A stretch of 64,000 nt of DNA from Macrostomum lignano (GCA_002269645.1 NIVC01003894.1:7076-71075); one strand, 5' to 3'; numbered from the stretch's first letter, positions 2,782 to 64,000 are shown. Made by a program: numbers and translations. Notes: generated from the sequence alone by a model not told the origin.

Positions 2782-2951
2782 ATGATAAAAAATCTTCTAA
2801 ATTTCTTTTCTCCTTTCTTTTCCTTGACTGACAATATTGCTTTCTCTTCCTTTCTTTCTCTTCCTTTTTTCTTTCCTTCTTTTCTAGCTTTTGCTCTCTC
2901 TCCCTGCATTGCGACTCTTTACGTGACTACGAGTATTGACGAACTGACACA

Positions 2952-11983: not shown

Positions 11984-11997
11984 GGATTCGGGACTGG

Positions 11998-13984: not shown

Positions 13985-13994
13985 TTGAATGTTA

Positions 13995-35064: not shown

Positions 35065-35397
35065 GCGGCTTGGCTGCAGTGCCGGCCTCCAACCTTTTTA
35101 TACACATTAAATGGCGCTGAACCGGGCAAGAAGGATGGCGGGGGGGGGGGGTAGACAGCTGATCCGGCTTTGCTGGGCGTTGAAAATGCCGACCTGTCAG
35201 CGGGAGCAAAGTGCCGAGATTCAGCTACTAACAGAATCTCTTGCAGAGTCAACGAGCCTTCGAAAACTCTTCATCCACTTTGTTTAGCAGCTGCAAGCTT
35301 AATAAAATAAATGCATCTTTAAGGAGCAAGAGAGGCGGCAAACTAAAAGGCGAAAGTGGCAAACTGAAAGACAGGGAAGAGGGAAACTGGTGGAACC

Positions 35398-35733
35398 GCT
35401 GAGATGTCAAGGCTTGGGGGAATTGCTGAGATGTCAAGGCTTACTGGGGGAATCGCTGAGATGTCAAGGCTATGGGGGGAATCGCTGAGATGTCAAGGCT
35501 TACTGGGGGAATCGCTGAGATGTCAAGGCCATGGGGGGAATCGCTGAGATGTCAAGGCTTGGGGGAATTGCTGAGATGTCAAGGCTTACTGGGGGAATCG
35601 CTGAGATGTCAAGGCTATGGGGGGAATCGCTGAGATGTCAAGGCTTACTGGGGGAATCGCTGAGATGTCAAGGCTATGGGGGGAATCGCTGAGATGTCAA
35701 GGCTTACTGGGGGAATCGCTGAGATGTCAAGGC
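35398..35733. repeat. 27-30-bp minisatellite (GCTGAGATGTCAAGGC...GGGGGAATC) x~12
   Basis: Read directly. Confidence 0.93.
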
Positions 35734-35801
35734 AACGAAATAGGATTCACATCTAAAGGGGGGGCACTACGAGCGTAGATTACTAGTATAAATTAAAACG
35801 C

Positions 35802-37291
35802 TGGGGAACAGGGAAACTAAAAGACAGGGGAAGAGGGAAACTAAAAGACAGGGGAAGAGGGAAACTAAAAGACAGGGGAAGAGGGAAACTAAAAGGCAGG
35901 GGAAGAGGGAAACTAAAAGGCAGGGGAAGAGGGAAACTAAAAGACAGGGGAAGAGGGAAACTAAAAGACAGGGGAAGAGGGAAACTAAAAGACAGGGGAA
36001 GAGGGAAACTAAAAGGCAGGGGAAGAGGGAAACTAAAAGACAGGGGAAGAGGGAAACTAAAAGACAGGGGAAGAGGGAAACTAAAAGACAGGGGAAGAGG
36101 GAAACTAAAAGGCAGGGAAAAAGGGAAACTAAAAGGCAGGGGAAGAGGGAAACTAAAAGACAGGGGAAGAGGGAAACTAAAAGACAGGGGAAGAGGGAAA
36201 CTAAAAGACAGGGGAAGAGGGAAACTAAAAGGCAGGGGAAGAGGGAAACTAAAAGACAGGGGAAGAGGGAAACTAAAAGACAGGGGAAGAGGGAAACTAA
36301 AAGACAGGGGAAGAGGGAAACTAAAAGACAGGGGAAGAGGGAAACTAAAAGGCAAGGGAACAGGGAAACAAAAACGCTGGGGAAGAGGGAAACTAAAAGA
36401 CAGGGGAAGAGGGAAACTAAAAGACAGGGGAAGAGGGAAACGATAAGACAGGGGAAGAGGGAAACTAAAAGGCAGGGGAAGAGGGAAACTAAAAGGCAGG
36501 GGAAGAGGGAAACTAAAAGGCAGGGGAAGAGGGAAACTAAGGCAAACTAAAAGGCAGGGGAAGAGGGAAACTAAAAGGCAGGGGAAGAGGGAAACTAAAA
36601 GGCAGGGGAAGAGGGAAACTAAAAGGCAGGGGAAGAGGGAAACTAAAAGGCAGGGGAAGAGGGAAACTAAGGCAAACTAAAAGGCAGGGGAAGAGGGAAA
36701 CTAAAAGGCAGGGGAAGAGGGAAACTAAAAGGCAGGGGAAGAGGGAAACTAAGGCAAACTAAAAGGCAGGGAAAGAGGGAAACTAAATGGCAGGGGAAGA
36801 GGGAAACAAAAACGCTGGGGAAGAGGAAAACTGAAAGACAGGGAAAGAGGGAAACTAAGGCAAACTAAAAGGCAGGGGAAGAGGGAAACTAAAAGGCAGG
36901 GGAAGAGGGAAACTAAGGCAAACTAAAAGGCAGGGAAAGAGGGAAACTAAATGGCAGGGGAAGAGGGAAACAAAAACGCTGGGGAAGAGGAAAACTGAAA
37001 GACAGGGAAAGAGGGAAACTAAGGCAAACTAAAAGGCAGGGGAAGAGGGAAACTAAAAGGCAGGGGAAGAGGGAAACTAAGGCAAACTAAAAGGCAGGGG
37101 AAGAGGGAAACTAAGGCAAACTAAAAGGCAGGGGAAGAGGGAAACTAAGGCAAACTAAAAGGCAGGGAAAGAGGGAAACTAAATGGCAGGGGAAGAGGGA
37201 AACAAAAACGCTGGGGAAGAGGAAAACTGAAAGACAGGGAAAGAGGGAAACTAAGGCAAACTAAAAGGCAGGGGAAGAGGGAAACTAAAAG
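35802..37291. repeat. 24-bp purine-rich minisatellite (GGGAAACTAAAAG(A/G)CAGGGGAAGA), ~1.5 kb
   Basis: Read directly; the right half carries 10-bp GGCAAACTAA inserts and longer repeated blocks. Confidence 0.97.
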
Positions 37292-37536
37292 AGGGTACCC
37301 ATGTACTCAGACGCCTGTGTGGGTACAACGTCAGCAACAAGAAGACGGCTAGCACTGCATTGGTTATCTGGGCGAATGAAGCTGAAAAACAATGCTTTAG
37401 TATATTTTTGTCGTCACAATTGAAAGAATTTATATTAAAAGAAGAGTGCCGATCAGAGTGCAGGAAACAGAAAAAGGGTTGCAAGTTAAGGGCGCCTGGC
37501 TTTAGCGGGGTGTCAAGCGGGGTGTTAAACGAGGCG

Positions 37537-40196
37537 TCATCGATGCGTCAGCAGCAGCTCCCGCTGACGCCGCTTGTCCTTCATTCGCCGGTTCTGGAAC
37601 CAGATCTTCACCTGCGCCTCGGAGAGGCCCAGCCCGGCTGCGATCTCCAGGCGGCGCGCCCTGGTGAGGTACCGGCTGAAGTGGAACTCCTTCTCCAGCT
37701 CAGTCAGCTGTCTGTTGCTGAAACTCGTCCTGGACTGCTGCTGCTGCTGCTGATGATGATGATGATGCAGTCCCAATGCTTTTTCTTCATGCCGTTTCTC
37801 AACTTCTAAAAATTGTTTTTAAAAAATCTGGCAATTCATGACCAAGACAGCTCACTGTGCATCGCATGACCAACACAGCTCACTGTGCATCGCATGACCA
37901 ACTCAGCTCACTGTGCATCGCATGACCAACTCAGCTCACTGTGCATCGCATGACCAACACAGCTCACTGTGCATCGCATGACCAACACAGCTCACTGTGC
38001 ATCGCATGACCAACACAGCTCACTGTGCATCGCATGACCAACACAGCTCACTGTGCATCGCATGACAACACAGCTCACTGTGCATCGCATGACCAACACA
38101 GCTCACTGTGCATCGCATGACCAACACAGCTCACTGTGCATCGCATGACCAACACAGCTCACTGTGCATCGCATGACCAACTCAGCTCACTGTGCATCGC
38201 ATGACCAACTCAGCTCACTGTGCATCGCATGACCAACACAGCTCACTGTGCATCGCATGACCAACACAGCTCATTGTGCATCGCATGACAACACAGCTCA
38301 CTGTGCATCGCATGACCAACACAGCTCACTGTGCATCGCATGACCAACACAGCTCACTGTGCATCGCATGACCAACTCAGCTCACTGTGCATCGCATGAC
38401 CAACACAGCTCACTGTGCATCGCATGACCAACACAGCTCATTGTGCATCGCATGACAACACAGCTCACTGTGCATCGCATGACCAACTCAGCTCACTGTG
38501 TATCGCATGACAACACAGCTCACTGTGCATCGCATGACAACACAGCTCACTGTGCATCGCATGACCAACACAGCTCACTGTGCATCGCATGACCAACACA
38601 GCTCACTGTGCATCGCATGACCAACTCAGCTCACTGTGCATCGCATGACCAACTCAGCTCACTGTGCATCGCATGACAACACAGCTCACTGTGCATCGCA
38701 TGACCAACACAGCTCACTGTGCATCGCATGACCACATGACCAGGTGAATTCTCTGCATCCGATCGCGAATACTTAAAGCTTAGGCGCCTAAAAATCATAA
38801 CAGAGTAAAGTGCTCAGTGAACTCCCCAAAGTCGAGAGCTCGTTTTGGAGAGGCCAGCACGAAAGTCAGGCAACTGGCAGATGGGGGGACGTCCCGCGAG
38901 TCTTCCTGAACAGGCGCACTACCGCCTGCCCGCTTGAGGCTCGGGGGAAGCTGTGCATGGCTCGGGACCTAATGAGACGCTCCACAGATGTGTGGGCGGC
39001 TGAGCGACTGATGGAGCCAGAGAAGCGGGAGCGAGAGGTGGGAGGCGGACAGGTGGGTGACAAGTAAAGCCCGAGAAGCATAGACGTTGAACAAAGACTC
39101 CCTTAAGTCTCTGTCTCTGGTCTGGTATGAAAAGGTTTTCGATCTCCGTTTTCTTATATCGCTTGAATGAATTTTCCTCTTTGTGTACTTCTTGAGTGGA
39201 TGACTCTTTGAATTTTTCTGTTTAGCTACGGAACGATAAAATCCGGTCATCCTCAATGAAATCCGGTCAAGGAAGCCCCAAGCAAAGCCCCGGATCAAAC
39301 CGACTGAACTCATTAACTGGTCCGTTATGTACAGGCAGGTGCAAAGGTGCACAGCCAGCACATGGGTAAACTTGCTTTAAATTCGAATCAAGCAGGAGCG
39401 AATGGCTTTTTACACAGTTAATCCACAAGTTTCTCAATCTCAATTTGTTTTTCTATTCTTTTGTTTTTTTATTCGTTTGTTTTTCTATTCATTTGTTTTT
39501 CTATTTGTTTGTTTTTCTATTTGTTTGTTTTTCTATTCGTTTGCTTTTCTATTTGTTTGTTTTTCTATTTGTTTGTTTTTCCATTCATTTGTTTTTCTAT
39601 TCGTTTGTTTTTCTATTCATTTGTTTTTCTATTCATTTGTTTTTTTATTCGTTTGTTTTTCTATTCATTTGTTTTTCTATTCGTTTGTTTTTCTATTTGT
39701 TTGTTTTTCTATTCATTTGTTTTTCTATTCGTTTGTTTTTCTATTTGTTTGTTTTTCTATTCATTTGTTTTTCTATTCATTTGTTTTTCTATTCGTTTGT
39801 TTTTCTATTTGTTTGTTTTTCTATTCATTTGTTTTTCTATTCCTCACCATGAGAAGCTGCTGGTCGGCGGACGCTCAGCCACTTGAAGGCCGGCGTGGTG
39901 GCGGCAAATTCCGCAGCTGGCGTTCCCGGAGGTGGCGCATACCGGACAGCCTCGTCGCCAGAGGCGGCCTTCTGGCCGGGTGGCGCAGCTCGGAAGGCGG
40001 CCTGGACCGGCGGTCGCTTGCAGACGGGGCTGCTGGAGCAGCAAGAGCAGCTGGGCCAGATCTGCGGATGAGGCTGCAGGTGCTGCAGATGCTGATGCTG
40101 GTAATAATGCTGGGGAAACTGGAAAACCAGAGGCTGAGCTGGGTGACGGCAATGGCTGTCCACAGAATGCATTCCGCCGCTGCTTGCGTTGGTCAT
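37537..40196 (-). CDS. lab: Labial/Hox1 (paralogue group 1) homeobox protein, ~205 aa; exons 39848-40196 and 37537-37805
   Basis: Homeodomain [51 protein letters not shown] with PG1 signatures ([15 protein letters not shown]); hexapeptide-like AFKWLSVRR at the end of exon 1; phase-1 intron catg|gtgagg ... ttttag|aa. The start codon is less certain. Confidence 0.9.
37837..38735. repeat. 28-bp minisatellite (CAGCTCACTGTGCATCGCATGACCAACA) x~32 in the Hox1 intron
   Basis: Read directly; begins ~30 bp from the acceptor. Confidence 0.97.
39440..39841. repeat. 16-bp T-rich minisatellite (T(C/T)(A/G)TTTGTTTTTCTAT) x~25 abutting the Hox1 donor
   Basis: Read directly; explains the three F-rich spurious ORFs. 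Confidence 0.95.
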
Positions 40197-41052: not shown

Positions 41053-41331
41053 CCTATGGATTCCCTGCCAAATTGCCTATGGATTCCCAGCCAAATTCCC
41101 TATGGATTCTCTGCCGAATTCCCTATGGATTCCCTGCCAAATTGCCTATGGATTCCCAGCCAAATTCCCTATGGATTCTCTGCCGAATTCCCTATGGATT
41201 CCCTGCCAAATTGCCTATGGATTCCCAGCCAAATTCCCTATAGATTCCCGGACCAAATTCCCTATGGATTCCCTACCAAATTTCCTATGGATTCCCTGGA
41301 AAATTCCCGATGGATTCCCTGCCAAATTCCC
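41053..41331. repeat. 23-bp minisatellite (CCTATGGATTCCCTGCCAAATTG) arranged as 69-bp trimers
   Basis: Three variant monomers recur in order, then degenerate. Confidence 0.92.
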
Positions 41332-46431: not shown

Positions 46432-49400
46432 ATGTCTGAAGTTGACACACCAGTCCTCCTTGAAAATATCTCTGAGCTTGCAAAACTTTTGTCTGAGGTG
46501 AGCTTTAGTGTTTATACAATATATTTGCAAATAGATTCAGGTTTTCTAACAAGCTATGCTATATGAGAGAGGAAAATTGAGCTTTCAAAAGCTTTCTGGC
46601 AGGTGAATGCTCGGTCACAATGATTGACTGGCGCAGAATTAATTTTCCATTTCCCTCTCTCGCCCCTCAAGTCTAACCGAGTAGACGGCTATGTGATCAG
46701 CCAGTACCACAAGCTCAGGGAGCTGTTTGGCCGCTATGAGACGGCCCATTCGGTGGAAAGCCAGTTTCGCGTTGTGAGTTTTTTGAACTATAAAAGCCAT
46801 TTAATTGAAGAAAAACCAAACTAGCTCTGAATGAAGAATTGAGTTTCAGCCATGACTTGTGCCCCTTCCCTCGTGCAGGCCTCGCCAGACACAGCCATCT
46901 GCTCCGAGCATAGCGAAGATGAGCTGGCCGCGGATGCCAACACTGTGAGTGGAGTGCAGCTCGTTTCTGCTATCGTTTTTTTGCTCATTTTTATATCAAA
47001 ATAATAGATTTTTATATGGATATTTTGTAAGAAAATTGTCATTTGGGAGCTGGTGAATTCTACAGTGGTTGGCATCCGGCTGAGTCGTACTAAAACTGCC
47101 GCTCAAACCCCCCTCCCCCCAACTAAACAGTTGCGCATCCTCAACTCTGAGCTGGAGCAGCGCGACCTGGCAATTCAGAAGCTCACGGCGCAGGTCAAGT
47201 CGCTATCGGCTGTCAACGAAAAACTGAACATCGACCTGGAGATGCAGCGGACTGTCGTGTTCGAGGAGATGAAGAACCTATTCGACAAAATTTCCAAGGT
47301 TCTCTAACACTGTTCTGACCGTTGGGATTTCATTTTTTTGTTTTACTGTTGATAGCAAAAAATATATTCTAAATTGGCTTCAGATTCACAGCGAGCTCGA
47401 GGAAGACTCGTGCATCCGCAACGCCACAGCCGCCATGCTGCTCGGACAGGAGACCATCGAGCGCCTCGTGCGGGTTGTCTGCGACCTCAACGGCGGCGGC
47501 GACAGCAGCGCCATCAGACGGCAGGAGGATCCCGATGCCAGCCTGTCCAGCTTTCTCGCTATGGTCAAGTCAGATCGGCTTGAATACTGTGCATGCCTGC
47601 GCCAACGCTGTAGCCTTTCCTCCGGGCTCTCCGATACCGAGGCGAAAGTTCAGTCGCTTGTTTCAGACATCCAAGCCTTTGAATTGCATGATTCGCAGCT
47701 GGACCATCTGAAGCGATACTTGGAGCTCGACTCAGAGATTCTCAGTCTCAGTCGAAACTGCCTGCGCGGGGACAGCCGCAACATAGATTGGCGGCCCGGT
47801 GGGAAGCTGCATCCGAGCCGTTCCTACCCGGGGATCGGAGATCAGCTGCCGGGCGTGATCTCCCTCGCTTGCATTGAGCAGTCAGCAGCATTTGCATCTG
47901 CCGCTTCTAGCCAGTCAAGTTTGAACAAATCTGCTGCGTCTGAGGTCGCTGAGTTCCAGCAGAAAGTAGCCTCACTTTCTCGGTCACTGTCAAAGTCGCT
48001 CGATGTATTCCTAGAAAGCCAGCGAAGGGTTTCTATTTCTGCCGCTGGTCCAACACAGCCTCTTCGACCTAGCAAGAGTGCCGATTGTATTGAAGATTCC
48101 GCTGCAGAAGAATTCATAGCCGAAATAAATAGTCGTGGGCAAAAACGTGGCATGTGTGACCAGGGCACCCAGTGGGAAGCCCCCATGTTCACATACATGG
48201 CAAGCTCTCGCGACTACCTTGATAAGGACAGCAGTGTTTCCGGTATTCGAGTCAAAAATCTTACTCAAGGTGAAGTCAAAATTCAAGAAAATGTAACAAA
48301 TTTGGATTCTGAAGAGATGTGTATGCATACAGTTGTTTCCGAGTCTGCAGTACCGTCAGTCGTTTTTAATGTTTCATCAGATCGGCCCCATAAGCTTGAA
48401 AAGGGTACAGAATACATGAAAACTACCACAGCTGCAGTTGGTACTTTGACGGACGAGACTGGTCCACTGCTTACTACTGACATTGCTACAGGACGCGAGC
48501 GGACATGTAACGCCGCAGTTGAATTTGTCCCATGTTTTAACAGCGTTGATGTAGCTACTCTAACCTCTTTAGAACTTTGTGATGCATCTATAGAATGCCA
48601 ACAAGTCTTTAAACAGGATGCCTCTGTGGACAACATCAGACAGTTTAGCAGCCGCTACACGTCAACAGACGTTTCTGATACTTCTGATGCATCTACTGAG
48701 TTTAACGAAGTTTCAAGTGTCGAAGCATCTGTAACATGTTCTAATCTGCTCATCAGTGTTGCCGTTTCCACAGAGCATCCGCTAGTATCTGACGCAATTG
48801 TTGGAAGCGATATAGAGTTCTCTTGCTGCGAAAAAGCTGTCCAGTCTGTAAAAAATGCAAAAGAAGCGAGCATTTCGACGGATGTCCTTCTGATGTCTGA
48901 CGCAAGTACAGACTGTGAATGCCCTTCTAGAAGAGAAGCTGCTTCTGAATGTACTATTCAAGTTAAAAACGCTAGCTGCGGTGCTGAGCGTATTGAAGAA
49001 GCTACCAACTGCGATGAAATTGTTGTTCACGATGCAGCCATTGAATGTACGGTCGTATTGTCAAGTTCATATGTATCCACAGAGACCATTGAGATATCCG
49101 ATGCTGGTACAAATTGTGAGCCAAAGATTGTGAAAGATGCAGCTATTGACTGTTTATTGACAGTAAGAAATGCAGATTTATCCACAGAAGTAATTCGCAT
49201 GACGGAGACAAGCACCAACACGCCAAATCGTACTTCAACAGGAACTATTACTGATTCTTGTTTTAGTGGCTCCATGGACGTAGGCACGGATACACCTTTT
49301 GATAATTTCGCTGAAGCCACTCAGTGCGCGGGCGGTGAAGGAGTTAAAGGAAAAGATGTAAAAGTATGCACGCCACAATTGGAAAGATTTGAAGCAAGTA

Positions 49401-52400
49401 CAGATGGCACTGAGATGGCAGCTGATCAAGAAAGCCTAGCACAAGTCTTTGAGAGCTCTGATTTACGACAACCTGCTGATATAGCTACACATTATCAAAG
49501 TACCTCCAAAGTTAGCGATGCTATTAAAGGCAATGAAGCTACTACTACATCGACTGCACTCCTTGATAGTGGCTTTGTATGCAGAGAAATAAAAGCAACT
49601 AGCGATGCAAGTACGACCGCGAAAATGGAAGCCGACACGCGTGTGTTGGTTGATGCAAGCACCGAGAGTTTTAATCAAGCGCTAGTCAATGCAGAAGTGG
49701 ATTGTTCAATCAGAGTTACTAGTGTATGTGTATCAACTGATGCTTTTCAAAGTCGTGATGCATACACGATTGTTTCTAGCAGCGATGCAAGCATGGACTC
49801 AGAGCTGGGAATTTCCAAAGCTAAAGTGTTAATGGACAGCCAAAAAAACACTGATGCTTCATCAGCACCGAAACATTCTTTTGATCTAGTTGATCATACT
49901 GTAGTACATCCGCTTTTTTGCGATGCGTATTCGGCCACAGACAAAGCTATTCTAATTGATGCGAGTACCGATACAGAATTGGACTCTGGTTTCCCTGGAT
50001 TCCCAGTAGCTGCAGAAATGCTTGATGCTAGCGTTCAATGTGCTTTTGCATATAGTTCAGATAGTGTTCGCGAATTTTTTGGCGCTCAAAACAGTAAGTT
50101 CAAAATTGAAGCCGACAATGAGTCTACGGTCCATATAATGCATATAAAGGAGCGAAAGATGCAACAAAAAAATAGTTCTGATTCCGCTCAAGCAGCTGAT
50201 CAAGGTGCCTTAGGCGCAGCTAATACATTCATTGTGTCAGATGCTAGTACTCAAAGTGCAATGAGAAAAACTCGCAGTTGCAAAGAATTGTTTACAAGTG
50301 CTTTTAATTCTTCAGGTGCTCAGCCAATATTTCCAAGTTCAAACGTTAGTGATTTGCAAGAAGGAAGCGGTGCTCCATCAGATGCTAGTTTAGAATTTCG
50401 CAAGCCTCTGCTATCCGATTCTTCAGTTGATTGTACAATCATGACCGTTGATGCTCACACAACCACAGAATACTTTACTGCACCGGATATCCAGTATGCA
50501 GAAAATATGACTTCAGGCACTGATCCATCCAGTACTTGTGTTCCTTCTCGGACTGAAAATACTCGCGGTTTTTTTCACGACCAGGCATCTGTTTCTGATA
50601 ATAATGACCCGGCAAGAGAAAGCGCTTCCATTGCGGAGAGCAAAGTGGATTTTCCAACAGTTAAGAGCCTCTCAGAAAGCGGTTTTGTAACATCAGATCC
50701 TGCATGTGCCGAGACAGTTTTCAGACAATTTGATGCAGCCTTAATGACACAACCGAGATTCGGAGCAGCTAATGAATCAGTTCTTGAAGTACCAACATAT
50801 TTCCAATCCGACGAGGCAAAGAATCATGCTGTCTCTGCACCAAGCTCACTTCAAATGGAAGTCATGCATGATTATGTTCAAGGTGACGCAACATTTGAGT
50901 TGGACACCACCCAACAGCCTTTAATGTGACCGCTCGCAATTCTATGTCTGTTGAAACACAGACAGAAGTTCTAAGCCACCAAACCTTCGTGGAACGATAC
51001 AACGAAGAGATGAAAGTTGTCCTTCGTGACCTAAATATGCAAGTGTTCACTCTGTCTAACCAGAATATCAGTCTATCTGATGAGAACAGAGGTCTCAAAG
51101 AAGCGCTTGATTTTACACGATCCCTTATTGATGAATTTGAGTTGGAAGTATGTCGACTCTCTGATGAGCGGCAAGCCTTACGAGCTGAGTCAGAAACTAA
51201 GGACGTAAATCTTTCTCAGGCTAGTAATCACATCAAACAGCTCGTTGATCGATTGACCTGTTTGCAGACCGAAATTGATAAAGTGGGCGAAAAAGTATCA
51301 AAGGACTTCAATCAGCAAATTGGACTGCTGCCATCTGTAAACGGAGACTTATTGGCTAGACTTGATCGCTTATCGTTGGACGTTCTTGAGAAAAAATGTA
51401 TTCTTGAAACTATTTCGAGGCAACTCAAAAATCGCACATTTTTGAGAGCACCATTTAAAAGAGGGCAGCAAAAATCCGAATTCAATATACTAGATGAGCT
51501 TGATCACCTTATTTCTAGCCACGACCGAGCGTTGCAATCAGAATCCGAAATCCGTCGCCAGAATACATACCTTGAGGAGCTTTTGCGCATTAAGGACTCA
51601 AAATTAGTACAACTGGTAGAATTAAATCAAAGTCTGGAACAAAATATGGAGATACTTCGAGAAAAGTTACAGAGTTTCTTAGTAGATACGAGTTCTCAGC
51701 ATCATGTTAGTACTACAGCCCTCGCTCAATGTGAGGAATTTTTCGAAGAAAACGAGTTCTCGCATGATTTAGAGTATACATGCACATCGGAAACTGTTGG
51801 CCTTATAGATAGTAGTGGCTATACACTTCACGAAACAAGCGATCTTGGTGTTGCACATCAAATAGACGAATACACACAGCGCAAAAGTAGTGCGCTATTT
51901 GGACTTCAAACGGAAACCAACGAAATTATCAGGCTCTCGTCCAAAACATTTCGAATCAGAAGATGTGAGAGCTTACCCAATATTCTAATTTCAGCAAGCA
52001 TGCCACCTGTTCTAAGTATAGATCATACGATTCGAAAGATAATTGGACAAAAAGAGGAAAATTTAGCTCAAAATGCAGGCACAGGACATGCCAGCACCAG
52101 CGCAGAACTCGAGTTTGCTGATGCATCCAGTGGACTAAGCGAAGAGAGAGCTGATGCCAGCACAGACGTAAAGCTGGAATTTGCAGATGCATCGAGCAGA
52201 CTAAGCGACGAGAGAGTTGATGCCAGCACAAGCGCAAAACTCGAAGTTGCTGATGCGTCGAGTAGTGCAACTAAAGAAAGTATCGACGCAAGCACAAGCG
52301 CAAAAGTCAACATTGCTGATGCATCCAGTGGACTAAGCAAAGAGAGAGCTGATGCCAGCACCAGCGCAAAGCTCGAATGTGCTGATGCATCGAGCGGACT

Positions 52401-55400
52401 AAGCAAAGAGAGAGCTGATGCCAGCACCAGCGCAAAGCTCGAATTTGCTGATGCATCGAGCGGACTAAGCAAAGAGAGAGTGATGCCAGCACCAGCGCAA
52501 AACTCGAATTTGCTGATGCATCGAGCGGACTAAGCAGAGAGAGAGCTGATGCCAGCACCAGCCCAAAGGTCGAATTTGCTGATGCATCGAGCGGACTAAG
52601 CAAAGAGAGAGCTGATGCCAGCACCAGCGCAAAGCTCGAGTTTGCTGATGCATCGAGCGGACTAAGCAAAGAGACAGTTGATGCCAGCACAGACGCAAAA
52701 CTCGAGTATGCTGATGCATCGAGCGGACTAAGCGAAGAGAGAGTCGATGCCAGCACCAACGCGAAACTCGAAGTTGCTGATGCTTCGAGTAGTCCAACTA
52801 AAGAATGTATCGACCCAAGCACAAGCGCAAAACTCGAAATTGCTGATGCATCCAGTGAACTAAGTGAAGAGAGAGCTGATGCCAGCACAAGCGCCAATAT
52901 CGAAGTTGCTGAAGCATCGAGTGGACTAAGTGAAGAGAGAGCTGATGCCAGCACAAGCGCAAAGCTCGAATTTGCTGATGCATCCAGTGGACTAAGTGAA
53001 GAGAGAGCTGATGCCAGCACAGACGCAAAACTCGAGTATGCTGATGCATCGAGCGGACTAAGCGAAGAGGGAGTTGATGCCAGCACCAACGCGAAACTCG
53101 AAGTTGCTGATGCTTCGAGTCGTCCAACTAAAGAAAGTATCGACGCAAGCACAAGCGCAAAACTCGAAATTGCTGATGCATCCAGTGGACTAAGCGACGA
53201 GAGAGTTGATGCCAGCACAAGCGCTAAACTCGAATTTGCTGATGCATCCAGTGGACTAAGCAAAGAGAGAGTTGATGCCAGCACAGACGCAAAACTCGAG
53301 TATGCTGATGCATCGAGCGGACTAAGCGAAGAGAGAGCTGATGCCAGCACAAGCGCAAAACTCGAAATTGCTGATGCATCCAGTGGACTAAGCGAAGAGA
53401 GAGTTGATGCCAGCACAAGCGCAAAACTCGAAGTTGCTGATGCGTCGAGTAGTTCAACTAAAGAAAGTATCGACACAAGCGCAAAACTCGAAATTGCTGA
53501 TGCATCAAGTGGTTTTACTCAAGAAGGTGTTGACGCAAGCACAAGCGCAAAAGTCAACATTGCTGATGCATCCAGTGGACTAAGCAAAGAGAGAGCTAAT
53601 GCCAGCACCAGCGCAAAACTCGAATTTGCTGATGCATCGAGTGGACTAAGTGAAGAGAGAGCTGATGCCAGCACAAGCGCAAAGCTCGAATTTGCTGATG
53701 CATCGAGCGGACTAAGCAAAGAGAGAGCTGATGCCAGCACAGACGCAAAACTCGAGTATGCTGATGCATCGAGCGGACTAAGCGAAGAGAGAGTTGATGC
53801 CAGCACAAGCGCAAAACTCGAAGTTGCTGATGCATCCAGTGGACTAAGCGAAGAGAGAGTTGATGCCAGCACAAGCGCAAAACTCGAAGTTGCTGATGCG
53901 TCGAGTAGTGCAACTAAAGAAAGTATCGACGCAAGCACAAGCGCAAAACTCGAAATTGCTGATGCATCCAGTGGACTAAGCGAAGAGAGAGTTGATGCCA
54001 GCACAAGCGCAAAACTCGAATTTGCTGATGCATCCAGTGGACTAAGCAAAGAGAGAGCTGATGCCAGCACAAGCGCAAAACTCGAATTTGCTGATGCATC
54101 GAGCGGACTAAGCAAAGAGAGAGTTGATGCCAGCACAAGCGCAAAACTCGAAGTTGCTGATGCATCGAGTAGTGCAACTAAAGAAAGTATCGACGCAAGC
54201 ACAAGCGCAAAAATCAAAATTGCTGATGCATCCAGTGGACTAAGCGAAGAGAGAGTTGATGCCAGCACAGACGCAAAACTCGAAGTTGCTGATGCGTCCA
54301 GTGGACTAAGCAAAGAGAGAGCTGATGCCAGCACAAGCGCAAAACTCGAATTTGCTGATGCATCCAGTGGTTTTACTCAAGAAGGTGTTGACGCAAGCAC
54401 AAGCGCAAAAGTCAACATTGCTGATGCATCCAGTGGACTAAGCGAAGAGAGAGATGATGCCAGCACAGACGCAAAACTCGAAGTTGCTGATGCGTCCAGT
54501 GGACTAAGCAAAGAGAGAGCTGATGCCAGCACAAGCGCAAAACTCGAAGTTGCTGATGCGTCCAGTGGACTAAGCAAAGAGAGAGCTGATGCCAGCACCA
54601 GCGCAAAACTCGAAGTTGCTGATGCGTCGAGTAGTGCAACTAAAGAAAGTATCGACGCAAGCACAAGCGCAAAACTCGAATTTGCTGATGCATCCAGTGG
54701 TTTTACTCAAGAAGGTGTTGACGCAAGCACAAGCGCAAAAGTCAACATTGCTGATGCATCCAGTGGACTAAGCAAAGAGAGAGCTGATGCCAGCACAAGC
54801 GCAAAACTCGAATTTGCTGATGCATCGAGCGGACTAAGCGAAGAGAGAGTTGATGCCAGCACAAGCGCAAAACTCGAATTTGCAGATGCATCGAGCGGAT
54901 TAAGCGAAAAGAGAGCTGATGCCAGCACAAGCGCTAAAGTCGAAATTGCAGATGCATCGAGTGGTCCAACTAAAGAAAGTATCGACGCCAGCACAAGCAC
55001 AAAGATCGAATTTTCTGATGCTTCCAGTGGATTCACTGACGAGAGAATTGAGACAAGCGCGAGCACAAAACTTGAATTGCCTGTTGCCTCGATTGGCCAA
55101 ACTGAAAAACCAGATTTAACAGATACTCTTGTCACAAGTTCATATATTTTCGCTAAAGATAAGTTGAAGGCGTCCCTAAGCATGAGTGATCTTCATTTGC
55201 TACGTCAGGAATCAGAGAATCAACCCTTCGAGTCGTCTACTAAGGCATCTGCTTCACTCAAGAAACCAGTTATTCATGAGGATTTAACTAATACAGCTAA
55301 TTGGAGTGGTTCAAAGAGGCAATCTGGTTTAGACTTTTTGTTATCCTCTTTTATCGGCCCTAGATGTAATAGTCGCTGTTTAGACAAGGTGGCTCTAAAC

Positions 55401-58400
55401 ACACGATTAATTTCTCAGTCTGAAAGTTGCCTCGCAGTTGTTTCCTTGTCCTGTGATGCCTTCTGTCAAACGGATTCACCAGTCATGCCAGCTACATCAG
55501 CTTCATCAGAAGATTCCCATCAAAGAGTTGTTGAGCTCGGGCAAATTGCCTGGAACTCCGTCGCAGCAAACACGTTGAATTTGCACTCCGATGTCGATGA
55601 ATCTGAAGACGATTTTTATTCTGTTTCATCTGATATTCAACACATTGGACCAGATTATTCGTTTTTAGAGAGCCCTAACTCTAAATTTGAATTTCGCCAA
55701 CTTCAAGACTTGTATGAAAATGCGCTCAAAGAGAAAGAGACAATGCACAAGAAGCTTGAAGCTCTTGTAAACCGATCGGCCGAACTTGAGCAGACAATTG
55801 ACTTAGTTGCCGAGCGTGAGCGCATTCTTAGTGCGACAAATCGATCGTTAATGGAAGAAAAGGAAGTTCTAGAAGCGCGGTTAGAAATTTTGAGACACGA
55901 AAGGTCATCAATAGCCATTAATAATTCTAAATTGCAGGAATCACTTAGTTCGACTGAGCGGTTAAATAGCCAATTAAAGGCCGAAAGTGATGCCCTTCTA
56001 GCTGCAAAAAAGAATGCTGTGGCGGAGCAGGACCAATTGAGGGCTCATATAGATTCCATGAAATCAGAATTGTCCACACTGCACCAACTAATAGCCGAGG
56101 TAAAATCAGCAGAGGCTATCCTGCAGGAAAATAAGGAGCACCAGGCGCAGCAAATTCTTGCGGCAAATGATACGATCAAAGAAATGTCAATTGAAAAAGC
56201 TGCTCTTCAAGAAGAACAGCGTAAAATTGAGCAAAAGAATAAGAAGTTAGAAACTACGCTGAGAGCAACCGAATCAAAGTTCCAAGAGCTTTTGGACTCT
56301 CGAACTAAAGTCTATGAAGAAAAGCTGCAAATTGAAGAGAAACTCGCAGATGCTGAAAATCGAGCTTTTAACTTTCAACAACAGCTAGAGACTCGCTCAT
56401 TGTCTAATCCATCCGGTTTAGATCCTAACTGGGGAGATTCTCTATCCTGCAAGCCCTTTGATGACGAGACTGAAGCAAGTCCCACATATTTGAAAAATGC
56501 GTTGATTGAAGTTGCCGCTGAACGCGACGTTCTCGCACAAGATCTTGCAGAAATTCGTAGAGAGGCAAATGAACTGGAGTCTAAAAATGTTCTGTTGTCT
56601 GAGCAGATAAGACAACAAGACGAGTTGATTTTAAGTTTAAATTCGGAAGTAGATAACAGAGATGTCGAATTGAAGAGCAACGCTCTGAGTTAGAAAGTAA
56701 TAATGCTCGGATTGAGTCTCTTTTGTCTGAGACAAAAGATTTAAAGGCAATTGTTGCCAGACTAGAGACGGATTCATCCTTTTTCCGTGAATCTTTTTCA
56801 GAGGAGCTTAAAAATCTGACGAATGCTTATTATACTGGTTCAGATACCACTGTCATTACGGCAAATGCTTCTTCGCAAACGGATAATCAAGAATCTAACG
56901 AAGGCACTACTTTGTATAGTCAATGCGTAGAAGGTATTCAAAGCCTCAGCTACTATAAAAATGCCTTAAAAGAGTTGTTAAAAACAGTAAGAAGTCAGAG
57001 TCTTAGATTAGATCAACTCGCATCAGAGAAATCATCACTTCAGTCTGCTTTGCTAGTATCGACCGACCTAGTCGACATCGCAAATGCACCACAAGAAGTT
57101 TTGCACGAATGCAAAGGCACAAGCACTGCACTTAAGCTGATTGATTCTGCAGCACAAACTTCTGTATATTTGAATGATTCAGAAGTCCCTACTTACTCTA
57201 CTCCTAATACGATCTCACAGCGGCGCTTATTTAATGCTCTTAATTCCCCTCACTTGAAAGATTCTGGATTTAGTGCACCATCCGCGCTTGTTTTTTCCTG
57301 TGACGAGGAGACGCCAACACAAGACTCGAATGTAATTTCAAAAAAAGACTTCTGGTGCTATGCATTACCTACAACTACTGAAGCCAGTAGTCAAATTCCT
57401 GAGAAATTGGATGTGCCCAACAATGCTCTTAGCCTAAATTCAGATAGGACAGTTTCCTCCATCACTGGAGCTGATATCGAGCACAGTGGGTTCGGTTCTG
57501 GATCAGACAGACCTGACAGACAGGCCACTGCGGGCTTAAGTACAGAGCTTCTCCATAGTGATGCAAGCTCAGGTTCAACGGAAGCTGAAGCTCAACATAG
57601 TAAGCTTGATTCTAGTTTAAATGCTGAGGGTCTCCACATGGATGTAAGTATAGACTCATCAAACAGCAGCGTTGATACCAGCACTGGTGCTGCAGTCAAT
57701 TACATGCATAGTAAAATTAGTTGTAAATCTACTGACGGAAAAGTCGATTCGAGCTCAAGTGCAGTGCTTTTCGAGTCTGATGCAGATCCGGATTCATCTG
57801 AAAGGATAGTAGACGCCAATACTAACACTAAATTCCAGCACGGTGAGGTCGGTTATGGATCATCTGACAGTAAAATTGATGCCAGCACAAGCACAGAGTG
57901 TCTCCAAGAAAATGTATTATCGCGTGCATCAGAACAGAATCTGGATGCTGACACTAGTGCTGAGGTCGAGAATCGTGCTGCCGACGCCAGCACAGTTGCT
58001 GCAGTCAGTTATAGTGAAATCGGTCCTGGATCTACTGACAGAAAAGTCGATTCTAGCTCAAGTGCAGTGCTTTTCAAAGCTGACGCAGGTTCAGGATCAT
58101 CTGAAAGGATAGTAGATGCCAGCACTAGCGCTGAAGTTGAGCATAGTGAAATCGGCTCAGGATCATGTGCTGAAAAAGTCGATGCTAGCTCGAGTGCGGA
58201 GTGTATTCTAATCGACGCCAGTGTAGGCTCAACGGATGACAACGTCGATGCCAGCACAGTTGCTGCAGTCAGTTATAGCGAAATCAGTTCTGGAACTACT
58301 GACGGAAAAGTCGATTCTAGCTCAAGTGCTGTGATTTTCGAAGCTGACGCAGGTCCAGGTTCATCTGAAAGGATAGTAGACGCCAGTACTAACACTGAAT

Positions 58401-61400
58401 TCCAGCACGGTGAGGTCGGTTATGGATCGTCTGACGGTAAAATTGATGCCAGCACAAGCACAGAGTGTCTCCAAGAAAATGTATTATCGCGTGCATCAGA
58501 ACAGAATCTGGATGCTGACACTAGTGCTGAGGTCGAGAATCGTGCTGCCGACGCCAGCACAGTTGCTGCAGTCAGTTATAGTGAAATCGGTCCTGGATCT
58601 ACTGACAGAAAAGTCGATTCTAGCTCAAGTGCAGTGCTTTTCAAAGCTGACGCAGGTTCAGGATCATCTGAAAGGATAGTAGATGCCAGCACTAGCGCTG
58701 AAGTTGAGCATAGTGAAATCGGCTCAGGATCATGTGCTGAAAAAGTCGATGCTAGCTCGAGTGCGGAGTGTATTCTAATCGACGCCAGTGTAGGCTCAAC
58801 GGATGACAACGTCGATGCCAGCACAGTTGCTGCAGTCAGTTATAGCGAAATCAGTTCTGGAACTACTGACGGAAAAGTCGATTCTAGCTCAAGTGCTGTG
58901 CTTTTCGAAGCTGACGCAGGTCCAGGTTCATCTGAAAGGATAGTAGACGCCAGTACTAACACTGAATTCCAGCACGGTGAGGTCGGTTATGGTTCATCTG
59001 ACAGTAAAATTGATGCCAGCACAAGCACAGAGTGTCTCCAAGAAAATGTATTATCGCGTGCATCAGAACAGAATCTGGATGCTGACACTAGTGCTGAGGT
59101 CGAGAATCGTGCTGCCGACGCCAGCACAGTTGCTGCAGTCAGTTATAGTGAAATCGGTCCTGGATCTACTGACAGAAAAGTCGATTCTAGCTCAAGTGCA
59201 GTGCTTTTCAAAGCTGACGCAGGTTCAGGATCATCTGAAAGGAAAGTAGATGCCAGCACTAGCGCTGAAGTTGAGCATAGTGAAATCGGCTCAGGATCAT
59301 GTGCTGAAAAAGTCGATGCTAGCTCGAGTGCGGAGTGTATTCTAATCGACGCCAGTGTAGGCTCAACGGATGACAACGTCGATGCCAGCACAGTTACTGC
59401 AGTCAGTTATAGCGAAATCAGTTCTGGAACTACTGACGGAAAAGTCGATTCTAGCTCAAGTGCTGTGATTTTCGAAGCTGACGCAGGTCCAGGTTCATCT
59501 GAAAGGATAGTAGACGCCAGTACTAACACTGAATTCCAGCACGGTGAGGTCGGTTATGGATCGTCTGACGGTAAAATTGATGCCAGCACAAGCACAGAGT
59601 GTCTCCAAGAAAATGTATTATCGCGTGCATCAGAACAGAATCTGGATGCTGACACTAGTGCTGAGGTCGAGAATCGTGCTGCCGACGCCAGCACAGTTGC
59701 TGCAGTCAGTTATAGTGAAATCGGTCCTGGATCTACTGACAGAAAAGTCGATTCTAGCTCAAGTGCAGTGCTTTTCAAAGCTGACGCAGGTTCAGGATCA
59801 TCTGAAAGGATAGTAGATGCCAGCACTAGCGCTGAAGTTGAGCATAGTAAAATCGGCTCAGGATCATGTGCTGAAAAAGTCGATGCTAGCTCGAGTGCGG
59901 AGTGTATTCTAATCGACGCCAGTGTAGGCTCAACGGATGACAACGTCGATGCCAGCACAGTTGCTGCAGTCAGTTATAGCGAAATCAGTTCTGGAACTAC
60001 TGACGGAAAAGTCGATTCTAGCTCAAGTGCTGTGATTTTCGAAGCTGACGCAGGTCCAGGTTCATCTGAAAGGATAGTAGACGCCAGTACTAACACTGAA
60101 TTCCAGCACGGTGAGGTCGGTTATGGATCGTCTGACGGTAAAATTGATGCCAGCACAAGCACAGAGTGTCTCCAAGATAATGTATTGTCGCGTACATCAG
60201 AACGGAATATGGATGCTGACACTAGTGCTGAGGTCGAGAATCGTGCAGCCGAAAAGATTGATAAGAGTTCAAGTGTCGAAATCGGTGTATCTGTGTGCCG
60301 AAAGTGCCTAATGAGTATCCAAGAAGACGATGCCATTTTAGTCTCAGCGGAGGGTAACGTCGATGCCAGCACATCTGCTGCAGTCAGTTATAGCGAAATC
60401 GGTCCTGGATCTACTGACAGAAAAGTCGATTCTAGCTCAAGTGCTGTGCTTTTCGAAGCTGACGCAGGTCCAGTTTCATCTGAAAGGAAAGTAGACGCCA
60501 GTACTAACACTGAATTCCAGCACGGTGAGGTCGGTTATGGATCGTCTGACGGTAAAATTGATGCCAGCACAGGCACAGAGTGTCTCCAAGATAATGTATT
60601 GTCGCGTACATCAGAACGGAATCTGGATGCTGACACTAGTGCTGAGGTCGAGAATCGTGCAGCCGAAAAGATTGATAAGAATTCAGGTGTCGAAATCGGT
60701 GTATCTGTGTGCCGAAAGTGCCGAGTGAATATCCAAGAAGACGACGCCATTGTAGTCTCAACAGAGGTAACGTCGATGCCAGCACATCTGCTGCAGTCAG
60801 TTATAGTGAAATCGGTCCTGGATCTACTGACGGAAAAGTCGATTCTAGCTTAAGTGCAGTGCTTTTCCAGGCTGATTCAGGTTCAGGTTCATCTGAAAGG
60901 AAAGTAGATGCCAGCACTAGCGCTGAAGTTGAGCATAGTGAGATCGGCTCAGGATCATGTGCTGAAAAAGTCGATGCTAGCTCGAGTGCGAAGTGTATTC
61001 TAATCGACGCCAGTGTAGGCTCAACGGATGACAACGTCGATGCCAGCACAGTTGCTGCAGTCAGTTATAGCGAAATCGGTTGTGGAAATACTGACGGAAA
61101 AGTCGATTCTAGCTCAAGTGCAGTGCTTTTCAAAGCTGACGCAGGTTCAGGATCATCTGAAAGGATAGTAGATGCCAGCACTAGCGCTGAAGTTGAGCAT
61201 AGTGAAATCGGCTCAGGATCATGTGCTGAAAAAGTCGATGCTAGCTCGAGTGCGGAGTGTATTCTAATCGACGCCAGTGTAGGCTCAACGGATGACAACG
61301 TCGATGCCAGCACAGTTACTGCAGTCAGTTATAGCGAAATCAGTTCTGGAACTACTGACGGAAAAGTCGATTCTAGCTCAAGTGCTGTGATTTTCGAAGC

Positions 61401-64000
61401 TGACGCAGGTCCAGGTTCATCTGAAAGGATAGTAGACGCCAGTACTAACACTGAATTCCAGCACGGTGAGGTCGGTTATGGATCGTCTGACGGTAAAATT
61501 GATGCCAGCACAGGCACAGAGTGTCTCCAAGATAAGGTATTGTCGCGTACATCAGAACGGAATATGGATGCTGACACTAGTGCTGAGGTCGAGAATCGTG
61601 CAGCCGAAAAGATTGATAAGAGTTCAAGTGTCGAAATCGGTGTATCTGTGTGCCGAAAGTGCCTAATGAGTATCCAAGAAGACGATGCCATTTTAGTCTC
61701 AGCGGAGGGTAACGTCGATGCCAGCACATCTGCTGCAGTCAGTTATAGCGAAATCGGTCCTGGAACTACTGACGGAAAAGTCGATTCTAGCTCAAGTGCT
61801 GTGATTTTCGAAGCTGACGCAGGTCCAGGTTCATCTGAAAGGAAAGTAGACGCCAGTACTAACACTGAATTCCAGCACGGTGAGGTCGGTTATGGATCGT
61901 CTGACGGTAAAATTGATGCCAGCACAGGCACAGAGTGTCTCCAAGATAATGTATTGTCGCGTGCATCAGAACGGAATCTGGATGCTGACACTAGTGCTGA
62001 GGTCGAGAATCGTGCTGCCGACGCCAGCACAGTTGCTGCAGTCAGTTATAGTGAAATCGGTCCTGGATCTACTGACAGAAAAGTCGATTCTAGCTCAAGT
62101 GCAGTGCTTTTCGAAGCTGACGCAGGTCCAGGTTCATCTGAAAGGAAAGTAGATGCCAGCACTAGCGCTGAAGTTGAGCATAGTGAAATCGGCTCAGGAT
62201 CATGTGCTGGAAAAGTCGATGCGAGCTCGAGTGCGGAGTGTATTCTAATCGACGCCAGTGTAGGCTCAACGGATGACAACGTCGATGCCAGCACAGTTGC
62301 TGCAGTCAGTTATAGCGAAATCAGTTCTGGAACTACTGACGGAAAAGTCGATTCTAGCTCAAGTGCTGTGATTTTCGAAGCTGACGCAGGTCCAGGTTCA
62401 TCTGAAAGGATAGTAGACGCCAGTACTAACACTGAATTCCAGCACGGTGAGGTCGGTTATGGATCGTCTGACGGTAAAATTGATGCCAGCACAAGCACAG
62501 AGTGTCTCCAAGATAATGTATTGTCGCGTACATCAGAACGGAATATGGATGCTGACACTAGTGCTGAGGTCGAGAATCGTGCAGCCGAAAAGATTGATAA
62601 GAGTTCAAGTGTCGAAATCGGTGTATCTGTGTGCCGAAAGTGCCTAATGAGTATCCAAGAAGACGATGCCATTTTAGTCTCAGCGGAGGGTAACGTCGAT
62701 GCCAGCACATCTGCTGCAGTCAGTTATAGCGAAATCGGTCCTGGATCTACTGACAGAAAAGTCGATTCTAGCTCAAGTGCTGTGCTTTTCGAAGCTGACG
62801 CAGGTCCAGTTTCATCTGAAAGGAAAGTAGACGCCAGTACTAACACTGAATTCCAGCACGGTGAGGTCGGTTATGGATCGTCTGACCGTAAAATTGATGC
62901 CAGCACAGGCACAGAGTGTCTCCAAGATAATGTATTGTCGCGTACATCAGAACGGAATCTGGATGCTGACACTAGTGCTGAGGTCGAGAATCGTGCAGCC
63001 GAAAAGATTGATAAGAATTCAGGTGTCGAAATCGTGTATCTGTGTGCCGAAAGTGCCGAGTGAATATCCAAGAAGACGACGCCATTGTAGTCTCAACGGA
63101 TGACAACGTCGATGCCAGCACAGTTACTGCAGTCAGTTATAGCGAAATCAGTTCTGGAACTACTGACGGAAAAGTCGATTCTAGCTCAAGTGCTGTGATT
63201 TTCGAAGCTGACGCAGGTCCAGGTTCATCTGAAAGGATAGTAGACGCCAGTACTAACACTGAATTCCAGCACGGTGAGGTCGGTTATGGATCGTCTGACG
63301 GTAAAATTGATGCCAGCACAGGCACAGAGTGTCTCCAAGATAAGGTATTGTCGCGTACATCAGAACGGAATATGGATGCTGACACTAGTGCTGAGGTCGA
63401 GAATCGTGCAGCCGAAAAGATTGATAAGAGTTCAAGTGTCGAAATCGGTGTATCTGTGTGCCGAAAGTGCCTAATGAGTATCCAAGAAGACGATGCCATT
63501 TTAGTCTCAGCGGAGGGTAACGTCGATGCCAGCACATCTGCTGCAGTCAGTTATAGCGAAATCGGTCCTGGAACTACTGACGGAAAAGTCGATTCTAGCT
63601 CAAGTGCTGTGATTTTCGAAGCTGACGCAGGTCCAGGTTCATCTGAAAGGAAAGTAGACGCCAGTACTAACACTGAATTCCAGCACGGTGAGGTCGGTTT
63701 ATGGATCGTCTGACGGTAAAATTGATGCCAGCACAGGCACAGAGTGTCTCCAAGATAATGTATTGTCGCGTGCATCAGAACGGAATCTGGATGCTGACAC
63801 TAGTGCTGAGGTCGAGAATCGTGCTGCCGACGCCAGCACAGGTTGCTGCAGTCAGTTATAGTGTGAAATCGGTCCTGGATCTACTGACAGAAAGTCGATT
63901 CTAGCTCAAGTGCAGTGCTTTTCGAAGCTGACGCAGGTCCAGGTTCATCTGAAAGGAAAGTAGATGCCAGCACTAGCGCTGAAGTTGAGCATAGTGAAAT
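46432..64000 (+). CDS. Giant coiled-coil and DAST-repeat protein (>5,600 aa, 3'-open); exons 46432-46497, 46672-46773, 46879-46944, 47131-47298, 47384->64000
   Basis: Four small phase-0 exons with GT-AG boundaries join in frame to the 47435 ORF. ORFs at 47435, 50926, (52482)-55077, 56723, 60709 and 63042 are successive -1 frames of one protein. Coiled coils lie at ~47131-47300, ~50990-51660 and ~55700-57050; acidic S/T/A/D-rich repeats lie between them. Confidence 0.85.
52087..55075 (+). repeat. Coding 66-bp (22-aa) repeat DASTSAKLEFADASSGLSKERA x~45
   Basis: The frame is continuous from ~52482 to 56693 at every point checked; the ORF track misses it only because there is no start codon; indels are in frame apart from 52481. 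Confidence 0.95.
57670..64000 (+). repeat. Coding higher-order repeat: 567-bp (189-aa) unit of eight diverged 22-aa monomers plus a 13-aa linker, with rearranged 414-bp variants
   Basis: Shadow ORFs recur at 57843, 58410, 58977, 59544 and 60111 (567-bp period); monomers start DAST/DSSS/DADT; a CRKC-containing insert occurs six times. Confidence 0.95.

Follow-up and report, generated by a model that had tools for sequence, protein, structure and literature searches.

Clients of LC8 (dynein light chain) such as ASCIZ/ATMIN, Nup159 and CHICA carry tandem eight-residue strand motifs beside dimerising segments. Every validated binder has a TQT anchor or a variant of it, with the glutamine as the most conserved position, and the table of validated sites includes the TNT-anchored KIBRA/WWC sites VDKETNT[ED] and the CHICA site IDAATQTE (Jespersen et al. 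2019). In the L2 region of KANK1, a long region described in a 2026 preprint (PMC12803091), at least 15 weak and mostly Q-less LC8 sites (anchors TST, TNT, VNT, VMA and IGC) are joined by short uniform linkers of 3-4 residues, bind LC8 cooperatively and form rods with it. Since Q-less KANK1 sites bind LC8, a missing glutamine does not exclude a site. In this study, we analysed a 64,000-nucleotide (nt) stretch of the Macrostomum lignano genome (NIVC01003894.1:7076-71075, hereafter the window), of which positions 46432-64000 are the 5' part of the gene BOX15_Mlig029816g2, at least 17.6 kb long. The gene encodes a giant protein made up of coiled coils and, between them, three regions of D-A-S-[ST] motifs, one degenerate and two organised as tandem arrays (arrays 1 and 2). 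The original prediction had put it forward as a candidate hyper-multivalent LC8 scaffold with more than a hundred sites.

The protein resembles KANK1 in array 2, which has T-N-T-E and T-S-T-E units with an aspartate at position -4. KANK1 packs its sites, at least 15, into about 250 residues at a pitch of about 12, whereas here the units form pairs 22 residues apart, with more than 100 residues between pairs, and are surrounded by about 125 modules without the score of an LC8 site. The two proteins share no homology, and the LC8 sites described here are predicted from sequence alone. Tandem strand motifs beside dimerising segments also relate the protein to ASCIZ/ATMIN, Nup159 and CHICA, and single motifs come close to known ones. 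MSVETQTE is identical to the validated ATMIN site SSVETQTS at six of eight positions; IDAST[SG]TE matches the CHICA site, and VDASTNTE the validated KIBRA/WWC site VDKETNTE, also at six of eight. In contrast to ASCIZ/ATMIN, Nup159, CHICA and KIBRA, which conserve the TQT (or TNT) anchor, the conserved core here is D-A-S-[ST], and TQT occurs once in 5,674 residues.

We tentatively favour a reading, possible but somewhat short of probable, in which the gene product is a cytoplasmic dimeric coiled-coil scaffold, its strand-forming DAST arrays serve as a rod or spacer, and LC8 binding is plausible at about 25-30 sites. Should some of the repeats bind LC8, the protein would be the largest natural LC8 client and an independent invertebrate case of "weak motifs plus short linkers make rods". 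If LC8 does not bind, it would be an orphan of about 600 kDa with an invariant DAST module under purifying selection, and a candidate new strand-repeat architecture. RNA interference, in situ hybridisation and transgenesis are routine in M. lignano.

The gene and its giant acidic product

The protein analysed is the spliced, frame-repaired model of 5,674 residues, which is open at its C-terminus. The product therefore has at least this length and a mass of at least 591 kDa, with an isoelectric point (pI) of 4.36, a net charge of about -507 and a composition of 17% Ser, 12% Ala and 18% Asp plus Glu. No signal peptide was found in the model, its first residues (MSEVDTPVLLENISELAKLLSE) having no hydrophobic core, and no membrane segment, since no 19-residue window reaches transmembrane hydropathy (maximum 1.45). 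The predicted length of more than 5,600 residues and the missing signal peptide were thus borne out, and the gene product is a very acidic giant protein, predicted to be cytoplasmic.

Heptad-type segments, called above the 99.9th percentile of the shuffled protein, span residues 69-148, 308-351, 1372-1567 and 2859-3359, so that long heptad segments free of proline and glycine are present. Coiled coil 2 also shows autocorrelation at lag 14 (z = 5.4) and lag 42, both multiples of 7. The two main coiled coils and the three motif regions are arranged as follows.

48299-50970, plus strand: degenerate DAS region (residues ~440-1330), irregular spacing without an 11-residue period, best lags 35 and 12
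51094-51682, plus strand: coiled coil 1 (residues 1372-1567), called by heptad score
52081-55115, plus strand: array 1, about 45 copies of the 22-residue (66-nt) unit DASTSAKLEFADASSGLSKERA, made of two 11-residue half-units; Tandem Repeats Finder gives period 66 and 44.7 copies
55554-57056, plus strand: coiled coil 2 (residues 2859-3359), called by heptad score and by lag-14 and lag-42 autocorrelation
57743-64000 and beyond, plus strand: array 2, 86 or more units, each of about 22 residues, consensus [VI]DASTxxxVxxxEIGxGSxDxK, with 189-residue and 138-residue super-repeats

The protein contains 162 DAS motifs (149 DAS[ST], 96 DAST), in agreement with the expected number of well over a hundred. 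Neighbouring D[AS]S motifs are spaced by 11 residues in 95 cases and by 22 in 58. This spacing, given for the motifs in the original prediction, was found in the two tandem arrays and not in the degenerate region.

Six super-repeats of array 2 carry a CRKC insert. A 37-residue insert with a CxxC pair (AEKIDKSSSVEIGVSVCRKC[LR][MV][SN]IQEDDAI[LV]VS...) is confined to the 138-residue super-repeats, with copies at 60296-60307, 60710, 61651, 62632, 63045 and 63459; it gives a weak, sub-threshold match to a RING-type zinc finger (19.8 bits, the cut-off being 30; E = 8e-4).

The repeats are under coding constraint. Among 37 in-register units of array 1, the ratio of non-synonymous to synonymous substitution rates (dN/dS) is 0.30, and the D, A, S and T/S residues do not vary although synonymous changes occur. 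For the two DAS serines of the unit, different codon families are used: AGC in one half-unit, TCG/TCC in the other. Nearly all 22 positions are conserved, including the would-be linker residues L8, E9 and E20. The periods of the coding arrays (66, 132 and 414 nt) are all multiples of 3; the neighbouring non-coding minisatellites of the window have periods of 16, 22, 23, 28 and 37 nt.

The open frame starts with a methionine at 46432, immediately downstream of an in-frame stop, and runs through four short exons into a giant fifth one. There all three phases are used, and each open stretch, 540-1,400 codons long, overlaps the next end to end. Six single-base shifts account for these changes of frame, each being a 1-nt difference from a sister repeat unit or a sister copy of the gene, often in a short homopolymer.

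46432-46497, plus strand: exon 1 with the start codon, first residues as above; matches the RNA-based model P0002 and is followed by a GT donor
46672-46773, plus strand: exon 2, AG/GT borders, agrees with models P0001 and P0002
46879-46944, plus strand: exon 3, AG/GT borders, agrees with P0001 and P0002
47131-47298, plus strand: exon 4, AG/GT borders, matches P0002; bulk of the N-terminal heptad segment (residues 69-148)
47384-64000, plus strand: exon 5, more than 16.6 kb of overlapping open frames, still open at the contig end
50909-50911, plus strand: frameshift 1, one C lost from a C run; P0002, the protein of a sister copy, reads through (...ELDTTPTAFNVTARNSMSVETQTE)
52481, plus strand: frameshift 2, C absent; extra base present in sister copy L003
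56666, plus strand: frameshift 3, C absent; extra base present in L003
60766, plus strand: frameshift 4, G absent; extra base present in L003
63034, plus strand: frameshift 5, GG read as G, on the basis of the sister repeat at 60694
63699, plus strand: frameshift 6, TT read as TTT, on the basis of sister repeats

The contig NIVC01003894.1 belongs to assembly GCA_002269645.1 (Mlig_3_7) and terminates at window position 64000. Mlig_3_7 is a Canu build from PacBio reads with large redundant blocks, so indel errors and duplicate copies are expected; its annotation is derived from RNA-seq, hence the locus is transcribed. The locus was indeed assembled three times at about 99.8% identity, in the window, in L002 (NIVC01004169.1) and in L003 (NIVC01000652.1 1-15275, the start of a 403-kb contig). 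Between L003 and window 47913-62884 the identity is 99.84%, the differences being 6 mismatches and 18 single-base gaps. L002 and L003 each have their own indels at other places. Shifts 1-4 are restored by the sister copies, and shifts 5 and 6 were placed by sister repeats alone. Because the shifts are absent from the sister copies, four of them are, as judged by these alignments, PacBio indel errors of the assembly, and neither introns nor pseudogene decay. Introns were ruled out as the source of the frame changes, the shifts sitting within repeat units and differing by 1 nt from sister units or copies. Two additional frame breaks lie at 63840-64000, the last ~170 nt of the window, as expected at a low-quality contig end.

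All three contigs begin or stop within the gene: two stop inside it, and NIVC01000652.1 runs on. The window copy of array 2 exceeds that of L003 by at least 1.1 kb; in L003 the array stops about 1.1 kb earlier and is followed by a third coiled coil (...GYGSS, then GSEFESSQTLLAEANDSIIALKHELAVAQ...); the gene therefore continues beyond the window. Assembly indels and repeat-induced contig breaks explain why the gene is split into short models on three contigs, annotated as "partial" or "hypothetical" (Mlig029816g2, Mlig029816g6 and Mlig001161g3). Owing to these split models, the real size of the gene is invisible in the current annotation.

Could the gene be a decaying pseudogene, or a minisatellite expansion staying open by chance? 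The window copy has at least six frameshifts, the window is full of minisatellites, and stop-free minus-strand open reading frames (ORFs) lie inside array 1. However, each frameshift is a 1-nt indel specific to its copy, substitutions between the copies are almost absent (6 mismatches and 18 indels over 15 kb), and no in-frame stop interrupts stretches of 1,200-1,400 codons. With a dN/dS of 0.30 in array 1, repeat periods that are multiples of 3 and transcript-based gene models, a non-working gene appears extremely improbable.

No homologues were found outside M. lignano: queries with ORF1, array 2 and coiled coil 2 returned copies of the same gene alone, as did the N-terminal 471 residues searched against 1.84 billion representative proteins. 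The single match of array 2 (P0006) is the third copy of this gene. Sequence and profile searches of Pfam and the PDB gave nothing above threshold, the best Pfam match of models P0002-P0005 being CC4_CEP85 (17 bits against a cut-off of 27.3). The gene is thus real, transcribed, constrained and without detectable relatives. UniRef names attached to short fragments of it (HAP1 N-terminal, Dynactin, NAB) were rejected as identities, no such family appearing in Pfam scans of P0002-P0005 at E <= 10.

Giant, lineage-restricted, highly repetitive proteins that are hard to assemble have been described in this species as Mlig-ap1 and Mlig-ap2 (5,407 and 14,794 residues; PMC6410801). Unlike the present product, these are secreted, are cationic (KR regions) or built of 221/255-residue repeats, and have vWD, EGF, TSP1 and lectin domains. 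Identity with either was ruled out, as none of their domains was found in the Pfam scans and the pI here is 4.4. A related possibility places the acidic protein outside the cell, as a secreted or matrix component; it could be a phosphoprotein, or a polyanion that partners the cationic adhesive protein Mlig-ap1 or serves its release. The extreme acidity and the 24-31% Ser plus Thr of the repeat regions would suit such a role in an animal that makes giant lineage-specific adhesion repeat proteins, and for which a release model has negative charges competing with Mlig-ap1 (PMC6410801). Against it stand the RNA-supported N-terminus without a signal peptide, the lack of a membrane segment, the long heptad coiled coils typical of cytoplasmic proteins, and the failure of Pfam scans to find vWD, EGF and TSP1. 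We consider it very improbable.

Candidate LC8 sites

Eight-residue windows of the protein were scored with a log-odds matrix built from 79 validated LC8-binding 8-mers (Jespersen et al. 2019, Table S4). The leave-one-out scores of these binders start at -1.1, with 7.6 as the 10th percentile and 14.6 as the median; for 32 anchor-bearing non-binders the median is 7.6. As a reference, the KANK1 site best predicted by LC8Pred, ASRGVNTE, scores 9.4. Over the whole protein, 14 sites score at least 12 (0.5 expected from shuffles) and 32 at least 8 (3.0 expected). Outside the arrays, with TNT sites removed from the matrix, seven sites score at least 8 against 1.46 expected, a number reached in none of 200 shuffles, and three Q-anchored sites score at least 10 against 0.59 expected (1 of 200 shuffles).

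48155-48178, plus strand: CDQGTQWE, score 11.1, Q-anchored, about 40 residues past the N-terminal coil
50944-50967, plus strand: MSVETQTE, score 12.3, the sole TQT motif, directly before coiled coil 1
56861-56884, plus strand: ANASSQTD, score 12.4, Q-anchored, where coiled coil 2 is interrupted near its end
58376, 58943, 59510, 60077, 60491, 61432, 61846, 62413, 62827, 63240 and 63654, plus strand: starts of the 11 copies of VDASTNTE in array 2, score 14.6, equal to the median of known binders
array 2: 12 copies of IDAST[SG]TE, score 8.6

The three canonical Q-anchored sites lie at coiled-coil borders or within about 45 residues of them. Every IDAST[SG]TE of array 2 has a VDASTNTE, or else the diverged VDANTNTK at 57809, 66 nt upstream of it. 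The LC8-like units of array 2 form pairs 22 residues apart, with 116-167 residues between pairs and no 11-residue ladder. All six near-canonical strings on which the original prediction drew (SVETQTE, DASTQSA, DAFCQTD, ASSQTD, DQGTQWE and DASVQCA) are present in the protein.

The remaining modules, about 125 in number, make up the whole of array 1 and the greater part of array 2. They score between -8.4 and 0.0, mostly far below the weakest validated binder and at best on a level with it. The common ones are as follows.

ADASTSAK, score -8.2
ADASSGLS, score -6.3
VDSSSSAV, score -8.4
ADASTVAA, score -4.5
LDADTSAE, score -3.7
VDASSSAE, score -4.2
VDASTSAE, score 0.0

The ELM pattern for LC8, a scan of which had been proposed as a check, has no match in the repaired protein. 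TQT occurs once against 0.79 expected from shuffles, and [TVI]Q[TV] four times against 3.9. DAST is followed by S, G, N, V or D, not by Q. In LC8 numbering, the invariant core D-A-S-[ST] would occupy positions -4 to -1, and the anchor positions 0 and +1 are variable; selection for LC8 binding would leave the reverse pattern. We nevertheless retained an LC8 reading despite the chance-level TQT and ELM counts, because of the table of validated sites and the KANK1 preprint. From the motif scores, a set of about 25-30 candidate LC8 sites is credible, and one of more than 100 is not. Of the hyper-multivalent scaffold first proposed, the part supported is these 25-30 candidate sites within the range of known binders; the >100 sites are not supported, given the low scores of the other modules.

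In its full form, that proposal makes essentially every DAST module (about 150 per chain) a weak site, so that LC8 dimers zip two chains together or the protein acts as an LC8 sink. The 11-residue pitch would indeed accommodate an eight-residue motif and a three-residue linker, close to the 3-4 residues of KANK1. The aspartate at -4, the small residue at -2 and the threonine at -1 fit the preferences of binders, Q-less anchors do bind when multivalent, as in KANK1, and the arrays are flanked by dimerising coiled coils. The common modules, however, score from -8 to 0, Table S4 offers no precedent for anchors such as T-S-A-K or S-G-L-S, and the would-be anchor is the least conserved part of a module whose DAST prefix is invariant. 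Array 1 is also conserved over nearly its whole unit, including L8, E9 and E20, unlike a short motif with a free linker. We judge the scaffold or sink quite improbable. The boldest structural version, with all of the roughly 150 or more DAST modules as weak cooperative sites at an 11-residue pitch, would be by far the longest LC8-zippered rod known and a lineage-specific cytoskeletal filament working on the KANK1 principle; this too we hold to be improbable. A milder rod may be drawn from the motif scores, with about 25-30 sites made up of clamps of the canonical type at the coil borders plus array 2's TNT/TST units.

Fold of the arrays and the place of LC8

In both arrays, the power of the hydrophobic moment is maximal at 160-165 degrees, the alternation of a beta-strand, and is 3-4.5 times the power at 100 degrees. 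The array modules are 11-residue amphipathic beta-strand-type units, and the arrays are strand-prone. Array fragments were also modelled with AlphaFold2, using a pseudo-alignment of shifted repeat windows, which MAFFT realigned to their true offsets, so that it added little diversity. Confidence is given as pLDDT, a predicted score on the local distance difference test, and the predicted template modelling score (pTM).

Array 1 fragment: all-beta, strands every 11 residues; pLDDT 65.9, pTM 0.64, three of five models agree; best Foldseek E 0.088
Array 2 fragment: all-beta, strands every 11 residues; pLDDT 63.6, pTM 0.60, one of five models agrees; best Foldseek E 0.34

The Foldseek neighbours of these models are all beta-solenoids (pectate lyase, SufD, LpxD, CsgA, FapC and ice-binding proteins), none of them significant. 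The arrays share with beta-solenoid proteins with coils of about 18-23 residues (CsgA, FapC, the RTX beta-roll and pectate-lyase-type folds) a unit of 22 residues with two strand halves and conserved small or polar turn residues, and such folds are the sole structural neighbours of the array models. There is no sequence similarity to these proteins, however, all Foldseek E-values exceed 0.08 and the confidence of the models is too low to claim the fold. The CsgA, FapC, RTX and pectate-lyase types are, moreover, secreted bacterial proteins, whereas the present one is a eukaryotic coiled-coil protein, predicted to be cytoplasmic. The coiled coils do alternate with acidic tracts, as had been predicted; that these tracts are disordered was not established, the charge-hydropathy values being borderline and the AlphaFold2 models beta at pLDDT 64-66.

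These results bear on an explanation without any role for LC8, in which the arrays fold alone as rods resembling a beta-solenoid or beta-roll, with one 22-residue coil per unit and a rise of about 0.48 nm. Stacked Asp/Ser/Thr turns might then hold cations, and a strand-turn repeat rich in Asp, Ser and Thr would give rise to the LC8-like strings as a by-product. The all-beta models with strands every 11 residues (pTM 0.60-0.64), their exclusively beta-solenoid neighbours (pectate lyase, LpxD, CsgA, FapC), the beta-type hydrophobic moment and the conservation of array 1 across the whole unit are all consistent with this explanation. It is weakened by pLDDT values below 70, by the disagreement among the five array 2 models, by the known bias of AlphaFold2 towards beta-solenoids on repeats (PMC11795689), and by a hydrophobic content of just 13-21% with a high net charge, which puts the arrays on the order/disorder boundary. 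It also leaves unexplained the enrichment of Q-anchored sites outside the arrays (three scoring at least 10 against 0.59 expected, 1 of 200 shuffles). We regard an LC8-free rod as unlikely, although well worth keeping in view.

The scaffold with a limited set of LC8 sites draws on both lines of evidence. The coiled coils would pair two chains in register, and the arrays would be long spacer or rod segments of strand-forming modules, in which the conserved DAST would act as a structural turn or cap element and not as an LC8 anchor. LC8 might bind at the three canonical Q-anchored sites on the coil borders, possibly clamping the dimer, and could also bind at the ~23 T-N-T-E or T-[SG]-T-E units of array 2.

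Several points weigh against this scaffold. The scoring matrix is our own rebuild and not LC8Pred; the score of VDASTNTE leans on three paralogous WWC sites, falling to 12.7 when they are collapsed and to 8.7 when they are removed; and the tandem copies of the LC8-like units are not independent observations. As to the fold, AlphaFold2 reached low to moderate confidence (pLDDT 66 and 64), just one of the five models of the array 2 fragment exceeds a pLDDT of 50, Foldseek E-values are all above 0.08, and AlphaFold2 is known to invent beta-solenoids on repeat sequences (PMC11795689). Lying on the order/disorder boundary in charge and hydropathy, the arrays may just be disordered. The C-terminus lies beyond the contig end, outside the repaired model. 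Finally, a look for the gene identifiers in full text and in the supplements of four M. lignano papers did not find them, and yielded no expression, localisation or binding data.

Other features of the window

On the minus strand of array 1 (52068-55183), ORFs of 100-389 residues (LDASA.../LVLAS... readings) are artefacts of the stop-free 66-nt repeat. As candidate coding sequences, these minus-strand ORFs (up to 389 residues) were rejected as by-products of stop-free repeats, since only the plus-strand frames reach unique coding sequence.

Elsewhere in the window, a pol fragment of a Ty3/gypsy-type long terminal repeat retrotransposon lies at 446-2781 on the plus strand, split over two ORFs, with reverse transcriptase and RNase H at 446-1537 and the integrase core at 1927-2781. 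The minus strand at 16313-17686 carries the gene for 26S proteasome regulatory subunit 7 (PSMC2/Rpt1), in which PRS7_OB and AAA domains are encoded; its long ORF traverses an internal 33-nt tandem repeat (16882-17133), apparently an intron held open by the repeat.

Two further segments with ORFs have no Pfam match. A GC-rich (60%) segment at 10830-11983 on the minus strand holds ORFs with a proline-rich PKPEL repeat of 15-nt period and a Gln/Leu-rich, coiled-coil-like stretch. A 184-residue ORF at 27643-28197 on the plus strand, with a hydrophobic segment in its N-terminal part (MSTSTVIFFIISVGTFAILLMLAVALFL), may belong as an exon to a gene for a membrane protein.

Dense non-coding minisatellites occupy 11993-14432, 15443-16362, 35386-37292, 37837-38734, 39444-39842 and 41053-41331, with periods of 22/44, 23, 37, 24/48, 28, 16 and 23 nt. 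In some of them the strand composition is extreme, with an AT skew of 0.55 at 36-38 kb. The minisatellites contain spurious long ORFs on both strands.

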